64,000 nucleotides of DNA, taken from the IMG/VR virus record IMGVR_UViG_3300005613_000002, positions 62,001 to 126,000 of that record; one strand, 5' to 3'. The notes under the pieces were generated by a model. That model was not told the origin of the DNA. It ran no database searches and saw only the letters and a list, made by a program, of their open reading frames with translations. The position numbers and the translations under genes were made by a program. This document shows, in pieces, positions 60,302 through 64,000 of the stretch. Numbering within the stretch: position 1 is the first letter of the stretch; every line of letters begins with the position of its first letter.

Positions 60302-60345
60302 AAATGAAAAATAATATAAATTTTTATTATTTTTTTTAAAAAGTA

Positions 60346-60375
60346 TTGTATTTATGATTTTAATGCGTATATTTG
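60346..60375 (+). promoter_or_regulatory. Host-type promoter (with overlapping late motif) for the leader/tRNA operon
   Basis: TTG-N19-TATATTTG; GTATTTAT at 60348-60355. Confidence 0.75.
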
Positions 60376-60406
60376 CATTATAATTTAGTGTTTAACAATT
60401 AGTATT

Positions 60407-60490
60407 ATGAAAAATTTAGTGAACATACAGCATCAACCCGTACAACATCCACAGGATATCGTTGAATGGGTAGATTATGTTCAAACTTAA
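60407..60490 (+). CDS. Attenuator leader peptide rich in Gln/His/Pro
   Basis: MKNLVNIQHQPVQHPQDIVEWVDYVQT*; 8 of 9 consecutive codons (60428-60454) are Q/H/P, matching the downstream tRNAs. Confidence 0.85.
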   Translation: MKNLVNIQHQPVQHPQDIVEWVDYVQT

Positions 60491-60520
60491 ATTTTTCCGA
60501 GAGAAGTTTTAATTTAGGGC

Positions 60521-60556
60521 AAAAAGTTCCATTCTATTTAGAGTGGAACTTTTTTT
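60521..60556 (+). terminator. Attenuator terminator upstream of the first tRNA
   Basis: AAAAAGTTCCATTCT-ATTT-AGAGTGGAACTTTTTTT; its 5' arm can alternatively pair with GAATGGG at 60464-60470. Confidence 0.85.
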
Positions 60557-60563
60557 GTTATAT

Positions 60564-60658
60564 CTGGGATTGAACGAGTGGTTGAAGTTACCAGCCTTGG
60601 AAACTGGTGAGGGCGATAAGATGGTTGTCCTCCGTGGGTTCGAACCCCACATCCCAGA
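60564..60658 (+). tRNA. tRNA-Pro(UGG) on a Ser-like class II scaffold
   Basis: Acceptor CTGGGAT/ATCCCAG, A73; anticodon arm CCAGC-CTTGGAA-ACTGG; 8-bp variable stem; T arm GTGGG-TTCGAAC-CCCAC. Confidence 0.8.
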
Positions 60659-60660
60659 CA

Positions 60661-60803
60661 AATGAATAATGGTAGTGTTAATATTATATATGGAGTAACT
60701 TGATGAATCCTTGAAGGAACGCTTGGTGAAAAATAGTAAAAGTATATAACAACAACACGCTAGTCGAAGATGACTGGAGTTATAGGCGAAAATCCTATTC
60801 ATT
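60661..60803 (+). ncRNA. tRNA-like structured ncRNA 1
   Basis: End pairing AATGA/TCATT; ATAATGGTA D-loop-like segment; long helix GTGTT..TTATATA/TATATAA..AACAC; hairpin CTAGTC/GACTGG; T-arm-like ATAGG-CGAAAAT-CCTAT. Confidence 0.55.
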
Positions 60804-60815
60804 GTTTATAAATAT

Positions 60816-60901
60816 GGTGATTGTTGCAGAGTGGTCAAATGCGCCAGATTGTGGTTCTGGTATCCGAAAGGATTTCGTGGGTTCGAAACCCATCATTCAC
60901 C
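60816..60901 (+). tRNA. tRNA-His(GUG) on a Tyr-like class II scaffold
   Basis: G-1:C73; anticodon arm CCAGA-TTGTGGT-TCTGG; variable arm ATCC-GAAA-GGAT. Confidence 0.85.
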
Positions 60902-60908
60902 CAAAAAT

Positions 60909-61021
60909 AATTAGTTACCCTGCTTGTTCCGTATGGGGTTATAAAAATACATCAATTAACGGAACTCATGATGGAGTCCTTGCCAAGAAAGTAGGATAAA
61001 GATGTTAGATATTAACTAATT
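60909..61021 (+). ncRNA. Structured ncRNA 2, possibly pseudoknotted
   Basis: Closing stem AATTAGTTA/TAACTAATT; GTTCCGT/ACGGAAC; TCCT/AGGA hairpin; loop ACATC can pair with GATGT. Confidence 0.5.
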
Positions 61022-61030
61022 TATAAATAT

Positions 61031-61105
61031 CGGGTAGTTATGCAGATGGCTATACAACGATGCCTTGGACGCATCGGTTCGCAGGTTCGAATCCTGCCTA
61101 TCCGA
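61031..61105 (+). tRNA. tRNA-Pro(UGG), atypical D arm, A37
   Basis: CGGGTAG/CTATCCG, A73; CGATGC-CTTGGAC-GCATCG; GCAGG-TTCGAAT-CCTGC. Confidence 0.75.
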
Positions 61106-61113
61106 CATAATAT

Positions 61114-61186
61114 AGAGTAGTAGCGCAGTTGGTAGCGTACTGCATTTGGGATGCAGGGGTCGCAGGTTCAAGTCCTGTCTACTCTA
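61114..61186 (+). tRNA. tRNA-Pro(UGG), class I, G37
   Basis: AGAGTAG/CTACTCT, A73; CTGCA-TTTGGGA-TGCAG; canonical D and T arms. Confidence 0.88.
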
Positions 61187-61188
61187 CT

Positions 61189-61260
61189 GTGTTAGTAGCA
61201 TAACTGGCTAATGCGCCACACTGTGAATGTGGAGAATAGGGTTCGAGTCCCTCTAACACC
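61189..61260 (+). tRNA. tRNA-His(GUG), class I, A37, 4-bp T stem
   Basis: GTGTTAG/CTAACAC, C73; CCACA-CTGTGAA-TGTGG; AGGG-TTCGAGT-CCCT. Confidence 0.8.
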
Positions 61261-61266
61261 CAACTT

Positions 61267-61350
61267 AGTCCTATGGTGGAATTGGTAAACACATCGTCCT
61301 TTGAAGGCGACACCCGAAAGGGTTTGTAGGTTCGAGTCCTACTAGGATTG
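61267..61350 (+). tRNA. tRNA-Gln(UUG) on a Leu-like class II scaffold
   Basis: AGTCCTA/TAGGATT, G73; D arm GTGGAATTGGTAAACAC; TCGTC-CTTTGAA-GGCGA; variable arm ACCC-GAAA-GGGT. Confidence 0.85.
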
Positions 61351-61383
61351 CAAAAGTGTGAAAAACATACTTTATTAAGACGA

Positions 61384-61471
61384 AAGAAGATTCAGAGATG
61401 GTTGACATTCATGTAACCAATAGCTCGATAATGGTAGGGTTATAGTGAAAAGTGATAATAATCTTCTTCCA
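61384..61471 (+). ncRNA. Structured ncRNA 3 ending in CCA
   Basis: Closing stem AAGAAGATT/AATCTTCTT + CCA; hairpin TGGTT-G-ACAT/ATGT-AACCA; ATAATGGTAG shared with ncRNA 1. Confidence 0.5.
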
Positions 61472-61505
61472 ATATGAAGTACAAGTATTGGATAGTCTTT
61501 TTTAT

Positions 61506-61580
61506 TGCCCATTGGTGTAATTGGCTAACACATCTGATTTTGATTCAGAAGACTTATAGGTTCGAATCCTATATGGGCAA
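61506..61580 (+). tRNA. tRNA-Gln(UUG), class I, A37
   Basis: TGCCCAT/ATGGGCA; TCTGA-TTTTGAT-TCAGA; ATAGG-TTCGAAT-CCTAT. Confidence 0.9.
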
Positions 61581-61633
61581 CTTTTCTCTTGCTACTTATT
61601 ATTTTTTTAATTATATTTATGAAAAATATAATT

Positions 61634-61832: not shown

Positions 61833-62117
61833 ATGATTTACAAACTAAAACATGTTCCAACTGGTTTATATTATCAACCACATAGACATCGAGGTAGCAA
61901 TTTAAGTAAAAGAGGTAAAATTTATCAAACTTCTACTCATGGTCTATCATCAGCATTTAAAAATAAAAGAGCAACATTTACTGTTTATTGTGAAAAAGAT
62001 AGTCGCATATATAAATTATGTAATAATATTTTAAATTTCGAAGATTATAGATTTTCATATAATCAAGTAAAAGCTGAAACAAAAGTAAGTGATTGGATAA
62101 TTGAAGAAATTAAATAA
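61833..62117 (+). CDS. Hypothetical protein
   Basis: 94 aa, YKLKHVPTGLYY...LSKRGKIY. Confidence 0.65.
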   Translation: MIYKLKHVPTGLYYQPHRHRGSNLSKRGKIYQTSTHGLSSAFKNKRATFTVYCEKDSRIYKLCNNILNFEDYRFSYNQVKAETKVSDWIIEEIK

Positions 62118-62122
62118 AAACA

Positions 62123-62521
62123 ATGAAATATAATTTATTCTTAGATGATGTTAGAAACCCGATTGATTGTGTATACTACATGTATACACCAATATATACT
62201 AGTGTTGACTGGGTGATAGTTAGAGATTATAATTCTTTTATTAAAATAATTAAAGAAAATGGTTTACCTGAAATAATCTCCTTCGATCATGATTTATCTG
62301 ATGAACATTATGACCCAAAAATGTATCATGAATCATATGATGAATTATATGATTCATTTAAAGAAAAAACTGGTTACGAATGTGCTAAATGGTTGGTAGA
62401 TTATTGTATTGATAATAATGAATTTCTACCAAAAAAAATATTAGTACATTCAATGAATCCTATTGGTAGACGAAATATTGAGTCTTATTTCGAATCATAT
62501 AATAAATCATTAAAATTATAG
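62123..62521 (+). CDS. Cyclic-phosphate-processing receiver (cREC)-domain protein
   Basis: LFLDD.R.P, ISFDHDL, KTGYECAKWL and VHSMNP.G motifs. Confidence 0.75.
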   Translation: MKYNLFLDDVRNPIDCVYYMYTPIYTSVDWVIVRDYNSFIKIIKENGLPEIISFDHDLSDEHYDPKMYHESYDELYDSFKEKTGYECAKWLVDYCIDNNEFLPKKILVHSMNPIGRRNIESYFESYNKSLKL

Positions 62522-62590: not shown

Positions 62591-64000
62591 ATGAAACATA
62601 CAAGAGAAGCAATAGGAGTAACATATGATGAATTAACAACTTTAATTGGGTCTGCTAGTTTAACTGTAGGACAAACATATAAAATTACTGATTATCAAAC
62701 TGTTCATTATTTAATTGATGGTGATGGTGGTGATGTGGTTTTAGAAGGTGGAACAGGTGATACTGTCGTTCATACAGGAAATACTGAGGCATTAGTTGTA
62801 ACAGCACTTACTGGTGAAGAATTATCACCAATTGCATATAGTGAAGAATATCTATATGATATTATTCATTATGATTGGAATCCTAATAATTGGTTGTTTG
62901 ACTTAGGTTTTAGTGCTTATGATGAAGCAGTAGTAACAGGATTTAAAGGTGTTATTTATTATAGAGAAGACACACAAAATAATAATATTTTCGGATATGA
63001 TTTCCGTAATGTAATGAATCGTAGATGGGTATTGGATTATGGAGAATGGACAGGTACAACAACATATAATTTTGCTGATAAGGTTCAAGTAGAAGGTGAT
63101 GGTCTTTATATGTCAACAAAAAATAATAACACAGACAATGCAGTTAGTGCTACAACATATTGGGATAAAATTGTTGATTATTCTAATTATTCATATTGGT
63201 GTTTAAATTCTGGTGATGCACAAGATATTGAAGATTATATTGATTCATTAACATTTAATGATAGTGAAGGTTCTTATGAGGATATTGTGAAAAATAATAT
63301 ATTCACTACAAATAAAGACAATACAGACATAGGAATGAGTCCAACTAATTCTATTTTGGATAATAATGTGTTTTATTTATTAGATGATGGAGCATTTAAT
63401 TTATCAGGTAATAAGTTTGGTGTTTATTTTCAATGTAACACTATTGATGGGAATTATTTCAATAATAACTCATTAGGTAATAATTGTAGTTCAAACACTA
63501 TAAGTCGTAATTTTGAGAATAATAAAATTGAAAATTCATTTAATGGTAATTTTATTGGTTATTCTTTTGATTCTAACATTATAGGAAATTATTTTCAAAC
63601 TAACACAATTGGAAGTGGTTTTGGTAAAAATTTAATTGGGAATTATTACCAAAATAATATAATTTCTGATGGTTTCATAAGTAATATAATTGGAAATTAC
63701 TTTTCAGGAAATGATGCAATTGGAAGTGATTTTGCTGAAAACTCAATTGGTAGTGATTTTCAAAGTGTTGAAGTTGGGACTGGATTTACTAATAACACAA
63801 TAGCAAATAGTTTTAAAAGTTCTTTTACTGTTGATGATTTCCATAATAATACAATAAAAGATGATGTTACTAGCATTAATTTTGCTTCAATGACACATGC
63901 TTATGAGGATTATAATTGTGAAGTGTTTTTAACTGCTAATGATGATTATAGATTATCATATTTTAATGCAAGTGATGTGCTTACTATTGTAGCTACAACA
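62591..64000 (+). CDS. Tail fibre/spike-like beta-helix protein, runs off the window edge
   Basis: Not in the track. MKHTREAIGVTYDELTTLIGSASLTVGQTYKITDYQT..., later tandem F.xNxIG repeats; late motif at 62567. Confidence 0.7.
   Translation, partial: MKHTREAIGVTYDELTTLIGSASLTVGQTYKITDYQTVHYLIDGDGGDVVLEGGTGDTVVHTGNTEALVVTALTGEELSPIAYSEEYLYDIIHYDWNPNNWLFDLGFSAYDEAVVTGFKGVIYYREDTQNNNIFGYDFRNVMNRRWVLDYGEWTGTTTYNFADKVQVEGDGLYMSTKNNNTDNAVSATTYWDKIVDYSNYSYWCLNSGDAQDIEDYIDSLTFNDSEGSYEDIVKNNIFTTNKDNTDIGMSPTNSILDNNVFYLLDDGAFNLSGNKFGVYFQCNTIDGNYFNNNSLGNNCSSNTISRNFENNKIENSFNGNFIGYSFDSNIIGNYFQTNTIGSGFGKNLIGNYYQNNIISDGFISNIIGNYFSGNDAIGSDFAENSIGSDFQSVEVGTGFTNNTIANSFKSSFTVDDFHNNTIKDDVTSINFASMTHAYEDYNCEVFLTANDDYRLSYFNASDVLTIVATT

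Follow-up and report, generated by a model that had tools for sequence, protein, structure and literature searches.

Putative codon-matched leader attenuators preceding tRNA gene arrays in a giant uncultured phage

In Proteobacteria, several amino-acid biosynthetic operons are controlled by leader-peptide attenuators (trpL, hisL, pheL and leuL, and the multivalent thrL and ilvL), in which a promoter-proximal short ORF with a run of regulatory codons is followed by three mutually exclusive pairings (1:2, 2:3 and 3:4) that end in an intrinsic terminator. The pheM leader of the E. coli pheST operon similarly appears to adjust phenylalanyl-tRNA synthetase to the availability of its cognate charged tRNA. 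T-box riboswitches also use a terminator/antiterminator switch to report the state of a specific tRNA, but they bind uncharged tRNA directly, without a ribosome. Why phages carry tRNA genes, and how they regulate them, has been debated for decades, the competing ideas being codon compensation, replacement of degraded host tRNAs, and evasion of anticodon nucleases. Phage tRNAs have been proposed to replace host tRNAs that have been cleaved (PMC10264068, PMC11464382, PMC11555353). We did not find a description of attenuator-controlled tRNA genes in our literature searches.

We analyzed a 64,000-nucleotide stretch of an uncultured phage genome (IMG/VR record IMGVR_UViG_3300005613_000002, positions 62,001 to 126,000), hereafter the window. 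An earlier note had described, from the sequence alone, a tRNA array behind a short ORF rich in Gln, His and Pro codons and a terminator, and had interpreted it as a ribosome-mediated attenuator. We confirmed every coordinate in that description. The features of the locus, all on the + strand, are as follows.

60345..60375 (+), promoter-like element of Bacteroidota type: (A)TTG at 60345-60348, a 19-nt spacer, and TATATTTG at 60368-60375; its function is inferred
60407..60490 (+), leader ORF, 27 codons, ATG to TAA
60428..60454 (+), proposed sensor tract, 8 of 9 codons Gln/His/Pro (CAG CAT CAA CCC GTA CAA CAT CCA CAG; QHQPVQHPQ)
60409..60497 (+), leader hairpin (1:2, the anti-antiterminator), which encloses the whole ORF and has at its base an A5U3AG/CUA3U5 helix followed by U residues, a possible pause signal
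60436..60446 (+), region 1 core inside the sensor tract (ACCCGT.ACAAC), which pairs with region 2
60461..60471 (+), region 2 (GTTGAATGGGT), which pairs either with region 1 or with the 5' arm of the terminator
60521..60556 (+), intrinsic terminator: 5' arm 60521-60535 (region 3, including TCCATTC at 60528-34), loop 60536-39, 3' arm 60540-60554 (region 4), T7 run 60550-60556
60564..60659 (+), tRNA-Pro (UGG), 96 nt, with a 24-nt extra arm (46.7 bits)
60817..60902 (+), tRNA-His (GUG), 86 nt, with an extra arm (45.3 bits)
61031..61106 (+), tRNA-Pro (UGG) (34.4 bits)
61114..61187 (+), tRNA-Pro (UGG) (67.8 bits)
61189..61261 (+), tRNA-His (GUG) (59.2 bits)
61267..61351 (+), tRNA-Gln (UUG), 85 nt, with an extra arm (54.7 bits)
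61506..61581 (+), tRNA-Gln (UUG) (64.8 bits)
62123..62521 (+), a context gene, not part of the attenuator, with a cREC_REC domain (cyclic-phosphate-processing receiver, an RNA-repair-associated family; Pfam PF20274, E = 1.2e-23)

All seven tRNAs (Pro-UGG x3, His-GUG x2 and Gln-UUG x2) were called by ARAGORN, and all scored above the Rfam tRNA gathering threshold. Apart from tRNAs, the only Rfam hits between 59500 and 62500 at E <= 1 were three at chance level, so no known leader, T-box or other cis-regulatory family was detected. The terminator (15-pair stem at 60521-60554, -17.3 kcal/mol) ends 7 nt before the first tRNA, which leaves no room for a promoter between them. There is likewise no room for one in L006 and L007 (L numbers denote the sequences used for comparison). 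The leader folds into one long hairpin with a minimum energy of -30.5 kcal/mol, containing the pairs TGAACATA/TATGTTCA, ACCCGT/ATGGGT and CAAC/GTTG. Its z-score against dinucleotide shuffles was -4.4, or -6.8 with the terminator included. The alternative pairing of GAATGGG (60464-70) with TCCATTC (60528-34) is the minimum-energy fold when region 1 is masked and the 3' arm of the terminator is absent. Taken alone, however, this duplex is weak (-8.5 kcal/mol, p = 0.10 against shuffled arms) and is the weakest of the set examined. Analysis of repeats and folding in the inter-tRNA spacers gave nothing conclusive.

The codon content of the leader exceeds chance. Of 127,948 nine-codon windows in six frames, only 3 loci reach 8 of 9 Gln/His/Pro codons, and this is the only one next to tRNAs. 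The enrichment is confined to the ATG frame (9 own-set codons against 2 and 1 in the other frames) and exceeds nucleotide shuffles of the ORF (p < 0.0002). Part of the Gln/Pro richness (CAA CCC C) is nevertheless forced by complementarity to region 2. The promoter is the least certain part of the locus. It lies about 30 nt before the ORF and fits a Bacteroidota-type TTG-N19-TAnnTTTG (60346-48 and 60368-75), but a sigma-70 scan did not call it, and neither TAnnTTTG nor TTTG-N18-21-TAnnTTTG was enriched in the window. Its support comes from conservation of the block upstream of all variants of this leader (leader 1), while the flanks diverge.

The earlier note proposed asking whether leader codons co-vary with array anticodons in related phages, and the comparison supports the attenuator interpretation. 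We found 12 distinct DNA variants of leader 1 in related ~320-kb jumbo-phage contigs and metagenomes, one of which (L030) was found without using any leader-1 pattern. A loosened DNA pattern applied to metagenomes returned 120 rows, but most were an unrelated repeat family in two samples (Ga0123355, Ga0123357), and about 10 loci were useful. A scan of genome contigs for leader 1 gave zero hits, and deposited phage genomes contained no homolog of leaders 1 or 2, only tRNA-level matches. The nearest isolates were only 35-38% identical (a Microcystis phage and Flavobacterium phages), so the host stays unknown. All 12 variants have a run of 6-9 Gln/His/Pro codons in permuted order, and wherever the contig extends far enough, only Pro/His/Gln tRNAs are called in the downstream array. 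The distance from ATG to region 2 is 45, 48, 51 or 54 nt in 11 of 12 variants. In L123, a +1 frameshift after the tract changes the peptide but keeps the region-2 nucleotides, so the 3' part is constrained as RNA and the tract is constrained as codons. In some relatives, 150-320 nt lie between the terminator and the first tRNA (a small ORF in L009 and L103 and a structured spacer in L003), and this could hide another promoter.

The same genomes hold two more leader families of the same design. Leader 2 (L002:6818-6934 in this phage, plus 7 other variants) has a 10-of-10 window of Asp/Glu/Val/Leu/Ala/Trp codons and no Gln/His/Pro codons. It precedes arrays of those six specificities in L024, L030 and L103, and in L007 apart from one tRNA of unassigned anticodon. 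Leader 3 (L153:19035-19115, plus 3 variants) has 7-8 of 10 Tyr/Lys codons and precedes Tyr/Lys arrays. The matrix of enrichment by leader and array is diagonal, with values of x4.7, x2.0 and x2.6 on the diagonal and x0.9 or less off it. Enrichment of own-set codons in the ATG frame exceeded nucleotide shuffles in all 21 leaders tested (p <= 0.018). Other tRNA-related genes in the same region are a T4 Rnl1-type RNA ligase, the cREC gene and a tmRNA.

We next examined whether the mutually exclusive structures are conserved. The RNAalifold consensus of leader 1 keeps the terminator and the inner 1:2 helix. Equilibrium folding of the full leader with a masked ribosome footprint still gave the terminator in most variants, and read-through would therefore have to be kinetic, as in trp. 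That analysis unrealistically allowed helices to close around the ribosome, and we replaced it with a co-transcriptional test and a duplex test. With region 1 masked and the 3' arm absent, region 2 paired with the 5' arm of the terminator in 10 of 11 variants, with energies of -16 to -26 kcal/mol against -13 to -19 for the terminators. A terminator is present in all 24 leaders with available downstream sequence, and in 19 of those 24, across the three families, the duplex between region 2 and the 5' arm beat shuffled arms at p < 0.01. Compensatory changes were also seen. GAATGGGG/CCCCATTC becomes GAGTGGGG/CCCCACT in L072 and L090, and in family 3, L157 has a different terminator and its leader carries the matching GAGACTG. 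Formal covariation in leader 1 is thin, however: there is one compensatory pair, probably one event, and it does not exceed the shuffles. The stop codon lies 7-12 nt after the region-2 duplex in 10 of 12 leader-1 variants, so a terminating ribosome would cover it. In the window the distance is 16 nt, and re-formation of 1:2 behind the ribosome has to be invoked, a step that is inferred.

We consider ribosome-mediated transcription attenuation of a tRNA operon the likely explanation, although the evidence is entirely computational and leader translation, stalling-dependent read-through and the promoter are inferred. In this model, transcription starts at the conserved promoter-like element and a ribosome begins translating the leader. 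If aminoacylated tRNA-Gln, -His and -Pro are plentiful, the ribosome runs through the tract to the stop codon, region 2 (GTTGAATGGG) is either covered by the terminating ribosome or re-paired with region 1, the terminator forms, and transcription ends before the first tRNA. If decoding of Gln/His/Pro codons is slow, the ribosome stalls on the tract and holds region 1. Region 2 then pairs with the 5' arm of the terminator as that arm emerges, the terminator cannot form, and RNA polymerase reads into the tRNA genes, whose products relieve the stall and close a negative-feedback loop on decoding capacity. The other two leaders would gate their own arrays in the same way.

What this circuit evolved to sense is less clear. 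The earlier note suggested loss of tRNAs to a host anticodon nuclease, but this specific trigger remains unsupported, and the only evidence for it is contextual. A T4 Rnl1-type RNA ligase lies directly upstream of the Lys/Tyr leader, and the cREC gene lies beside array 1 (with a homolog between arrays 1 and 2 in L007). As T4 Rnl1 is likely to act in repairing tRNA-Lys cut by PrrC, tRNA damage may be part of the role of this region. Alternatively, the leaders may simply balance supply and demand, if late-gene translation from an AT-rich phage genome outruns the host pool of certain tRNAs or if host shut-off by the phage depletes them; amino-acid starvation would then trigger the system as a side effect. 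The sensor would read decoding speed only and could not distinguish a missing tRNA from a cleaved or uncharged one. Gating of all three arrays, covering 11 amino acids, looks more like general homeostasis than a response to one nuclease of narrow specificity. Most specificities are present in two or three gene copies. We hold this alternative only tentatively.

Two other readings appear very unlikely. The short ORFs could be ordinary micro-protein genes with their own terminators, the arrays being expressed by leaky read-through or from other promoters and the codon match being coincidence or a by-product of base composition. Phage genomes are full of small ORFs, the MKNL N-terminus is conserved, and leader 2 is hydrophobic, resembles a transmembrane helix and could be read as a small membrane peptide. 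However, three unrelated peptides each match their own array and not the others, the permuted order, frame specificity and L123 frameshift argue against it, and complementarity between the 3' part of a leader and its own terminator has no role for a plain gene terminator. The locus could instead be a translation-independent RNA element, either a processing or pause signal or a T-box-like riboregulator binding tRNA or a protein directly, with the C/A-rich tract acting as an RNA motif. The leader hairpin is indeed unusually stable, and the tract codons are by definition complementary to the anticodons of the downstream tRNAs. A conserved ATG, an in-frame stop and indels in multiples of three are not expected of an untranslated element, though, and the own-set signal vanishes in the other two frames.

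It is probable that a clade of ~320-kb uncultured phages runs much of its tRNA complement as self-balancing modules, in which the ribosome itself measures the functional concentration of each tRNA group and sets its transcription. This would be the first case, in any organism, of leader-peptide attenuation controlling tRNA genes. In its strongest version it would be an inducible rescue circuit that fires when host defences cleave tRNAs, working together with the neighbouring Rnl1-type ligase and the odd extra-arm tRNA copies. Such attenuators would show that the phage makes tRNAs on demand, would extend a textbook mechanism to tRNAs, to phages and to a host lineage where attenuation is little studied, and would provide compact, programmable sensors of tRNA availability. 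The combination of short ORF, terminator and matched tRNA set would also give annotators a recognisable signature for tRNA arrays in metagenomic phage genomes.

As in phages that counter PrrC with Rnl1/Pnkp, or PARIS, retron and anticodon-nuclease defences with their own tRNAs, a large phage here carries tRNAs together with a T4 Rnl1-type ligase. Studies of those systems appear to concern which tRNAs phages carry and how they resist cleavage, and our searches did not turn up demand-sensing transcriptional control of phage tRNA arrays. T-boxes have a specifier loop and a conserved T-box motif, neither of which was detected here with the Rfam model, and the conserved ORF points to a ribosome-mediated mechanism. 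Like pheM, the proposed attenuator controls a component of the translation apparatus, but pheM is cellular, controls a synthetase and senses one amino acid, whereas here tRNA genes would be controlled, three to six specificities would be sensed at a time, and several parallel units occur in one genome. The biosynthetic attenuators share with this locus the short ORF, the regulatory codons, the three pairings, a stop codon placed so that a terminating ribosome occludes region 2, and, in thrL and ilvL, the sensing of several amino acids by one leader. No sequence similarity to them was detected in the Rfam search, the element is in a phage, and its promoter type suggests a Bacteroidota host. The genes downstream of the terminator are tRNA genes only, rather than genes for enzymes that make the amino acid, and the loop would therefore feed back on tRNA supply rather than amino-acid supply.

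The window belongs to IMGVR_UViG_3300005613_000002, a 321-kb contig of about 27% G+C with a T4-type portal and a tail sheath, that is, an uncultured jumbo myovirus. Its nearest isolates, a Microcystis phage and Flavobacterium phages, share only 35-38% portal identity. The earlier note had described a tRNA array behind a leader-peptide attenuator, and we confirmed that all of the sequence features it listed are present:

60346-48 and 60368-75, a promoter-like element fitting the Bacteroidota pattern TTG-N19-TAnnTTTG
60407-60490, a 27-codon ORF
60428-60454, the tract QHQPVQHPQ within that ORF
60409-60497, one long leader hairpin that encloses the ORF (z = -4.4)
60521-60554, a 15-pair terminator stem, followed by seven T residues ending at 60556
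seven nucleotides later, seven tRNA genes that are only Pro-UGG (3), His-GUG (2) and Gln-UUG (2)

The promoter is not a sigma-70 match. Since the Bacteroidota motif is not enriched in the window, support for this element comes only from its conservation in relatives.

Notably, one copy each of tRNA-Pro, -His and -Gln in this array (60564-60659, 60817-60902 and 61267-61351) carries a 13-24-nt extra stem-loop in the variable region, giving total lengths of 85-96 nt, although these amino acids normally have short-arm tRNAs. Long-arm tRNAs were also seen in loci L014, L030, L081, L103, L123 and L157; relatives have the same for Asp (86 nt), Glu (91), Val (87), Trp (84) and Lys (85), often beside a normal-length copy. 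Conversely, some tRNAs with Leu anticodons are only 74-76 nt long (L153:9585-9660, in a locus of this phage beyond the window, and in L007, from a relative). Each long-arm tRNA in the window is followed by a 128-157-nt spacer that is not a tRNA (60660-60816, 60903-61030 and 61352-61505), of which only the third folds better than shuffles (z = -2.9).

To determine whether the codon tract is more than chance, we examined 127,948 nine-codon windows in six frames. Three loci reach 8 of 9 Gln/His/Pro codons, and only this one lies in a short ATG-started ORF next to tRNAs. Gln, His and Pro together make up 7.6% of the phage's proteins and 9 of the 26 leader residues. The signal is confined to the ATG frame (9 own-set codons against 2 and 1 in the other frames). 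It also exceeds nucleotide shuffles of the ORF itself, so a C/A-rich composition does not explain it.

Searches with a neighbouring protein and a leader DNA pattern, together with a metagenome scan, recovered 12 distinct DNA variants of this leader (leader 1). One of them, L030, was found through a different element and therefore without selecting on leader 1. When the pattern was loosened, it also hit more than 80 copies of an unrelated repeated element beginning MKNLVSSYT in two metagenomes (L034-L152, from samples Ga0123355 and Ga0123357), which has nothing to do with the phage leaders. All 12 variants keep the ATG, and all have a run of 6-9 Gln/His/Pro codons whose order differs between variants (for example PQPQQHP, QPQHQPQ, QPHPQQP and HPQPQQHPH). 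Of the eleven whose sequence reaches that far, ten have a strong terminator, while variant L100 has a weaker one with a five-pair G-C stem. In every variant with enough downstream sequence, only Pro/His/Gln tRNAs are called in the array; the short contig of L100 shows only Pro and Gln. Unlike the window's array, the Pro/His/Gln arrays of relatives have protein-coding ORFs of 221-282 aa within them or at their end (L003:2111-2800 on the minus strand, L003:2861-3709 and L007:10037-10702). Two of these are Cys-rich and may be homing-endonuclease-like. In L003, a 308-nt spacer with higher G+C (L003:1575-1882) lies between the terminator and the first tRNA (z = -3.1); it ends in a T-arm-like hairpin and has no Rfam match.

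The distance from the ATG to region 2, the segment that can pair with either the tract or the terminator's 5' arm, is 45, 48, 51 or 54 nt in 11 of the 12 variants. The exception, L123, has a +1 shift after the tract that changes the peptide and moves the stop into region 2, yet leaves the region-2 nucleotides intact. So the tract is constrained as codons and the 3' part is constrained as RNA. No variant contains a Pro-Pro pair, the Pro codons of the tract always being separated by Gln, His or Val codons. This would avoid polyproline stalls unrelated to tRNA supply, although that purpose is inferred.

We next examined whether the leader can fold as a switch. The RNAalifold consensus keeps the terminator and an inner helix between the tract (CC and CAAC) and region 2 (GTTG..GG). 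When region 1 was made unavailable and the terminator's 3' arm was left out, the minimum-energy fold paired region 2 with the terminator's 5' arm in 10 of 11 variants, with energies of -16 to -26 kcal/mol against -13 to -19 for the terminators. However, with the full leader at equilibrium the terminator wins in most variants, so antitermination would have to be kinetic. A duplex test against shuffled arms gave p < 0.01 in 19 of 24 leaders across all three leader families (the other two are described below), but the window's own 2:3 duplex is the weakest of the set (-8.5 kcal/mol, p = 0.10). Variants L072 and L090 changed GAATGGGG/CCCCATTC to GAGTGGGG/CCCCACT, keeping the pair; formal covariation in leader 1 amounts to one pair and does not exceed shuffles. 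In 10 of 12 leader-1 variants the stop codon lies 7-12 nt after region 2, inside the footprint of a terminating ribosome.

The decisive comparison was with other arrays in the same genomes. Just past the window's end, at L002:6818-6934 (about 650 nt beyond position 64000), the same phage has a second promoter-like element, a short ORF and a terminator (leader 2). These are followed by Asp, Asp, Glu, Leu, Glu and, further on, Val, Leu, Ala, Ala and Trp, with one tRNA of unassigned anticodon between the two Ala genes. Eight variants of this leader all contain a window of 10 consecutive residues drawn only from Asp/Glu/Val/Leu/Ala/Trp (core ..VLLWDDAE..), and none contains Gln, His or Pro. In L024, L030 and L103 the arrays behind them hold exactly those six specificities, and in L007 the same six plus one tRNA of unassigned anticodon. 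The 3' end of these leaders (GTCGGG) is complementary to the 5' arm of their own terminator (CCCGAC).

A third unit (leader 3) lies at L153:19035-19115, about 11 kb past the window's end. It has four Tyr and five Lys codons among its first 15 codons and a terminator, and it precedes Tyr, Lys, Tyr, Lys. A tRNA-like sequence with normal D and T arms but a roughly 20-nt anticodon loop (L153:19401-19476), which ARAGORN does not call, lies between this terminator and the first tRNA-Tyr. ARAGORN also reports tRNAs with two-base anticodons at L153:12015-12088 and L007:8297-8371. Three relatives, found through the adjacent ligase gene, have Tyr/Lys-rich leaders ahead of Lys/Tyr arrays. L157 has a different terminator stem, and its leader carries the matching complement. 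Across the three families the enrichment matrix is diagonal: leader 1 has Gln/His/Pro at x4.7 over background, leader 2 has its six amino acids at x2.0, and leader 3 has Lys/Tyr at x2.6, with all off-diagonal values at x0.9 or less. A blind scan of all retrieved loci for a short ORF, terminator and tRNA found only these three families.

What such a circuit senses is decoding speed, and it cannot by itself distinguish tRNA loss, tRNA damage or lack of charging. The earlier note had proposed that the trigger is a host anticodon nuclease, which is plausible but not shown. The supporting context consists of RNA-repair and ribosome-rescue genes lying among the arrays:

window 62123-62521, a cREC_REC domain protein (E = 1.2e-23) beside array 1, the Pro/His/Gln array
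L153:17799-18887, a T4 Rnl1-type RNA ligase (PF09511, E = 4.8e-18) directly upstream of leader 3
L153:14038-14398, a phage-encoded tmRNA

General balancing of supply and demand is at least as likely. We are fairly confident that the element works as an attenuator, and less so of any particular trigger.

Four literature searches, covering leader peptides with tRNA genes or tRNA operons with attenuation, and phage tRNAs with anticodon nucleases, returned no description of attenuator-controlled tRNA genes. No homolog of leaders 1 or 2 exists in 50,697 deposited phage genomes, and no match to leader 1 exists in the bacterial genome collection. The architecture satisfies every sequence-level criterion of a leader-peptide attenuator, which is a known mechanism. 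What is new is the target, the tRNAs themselves: stalling at codons read by an array would open that array, and its products would relieve the stall.
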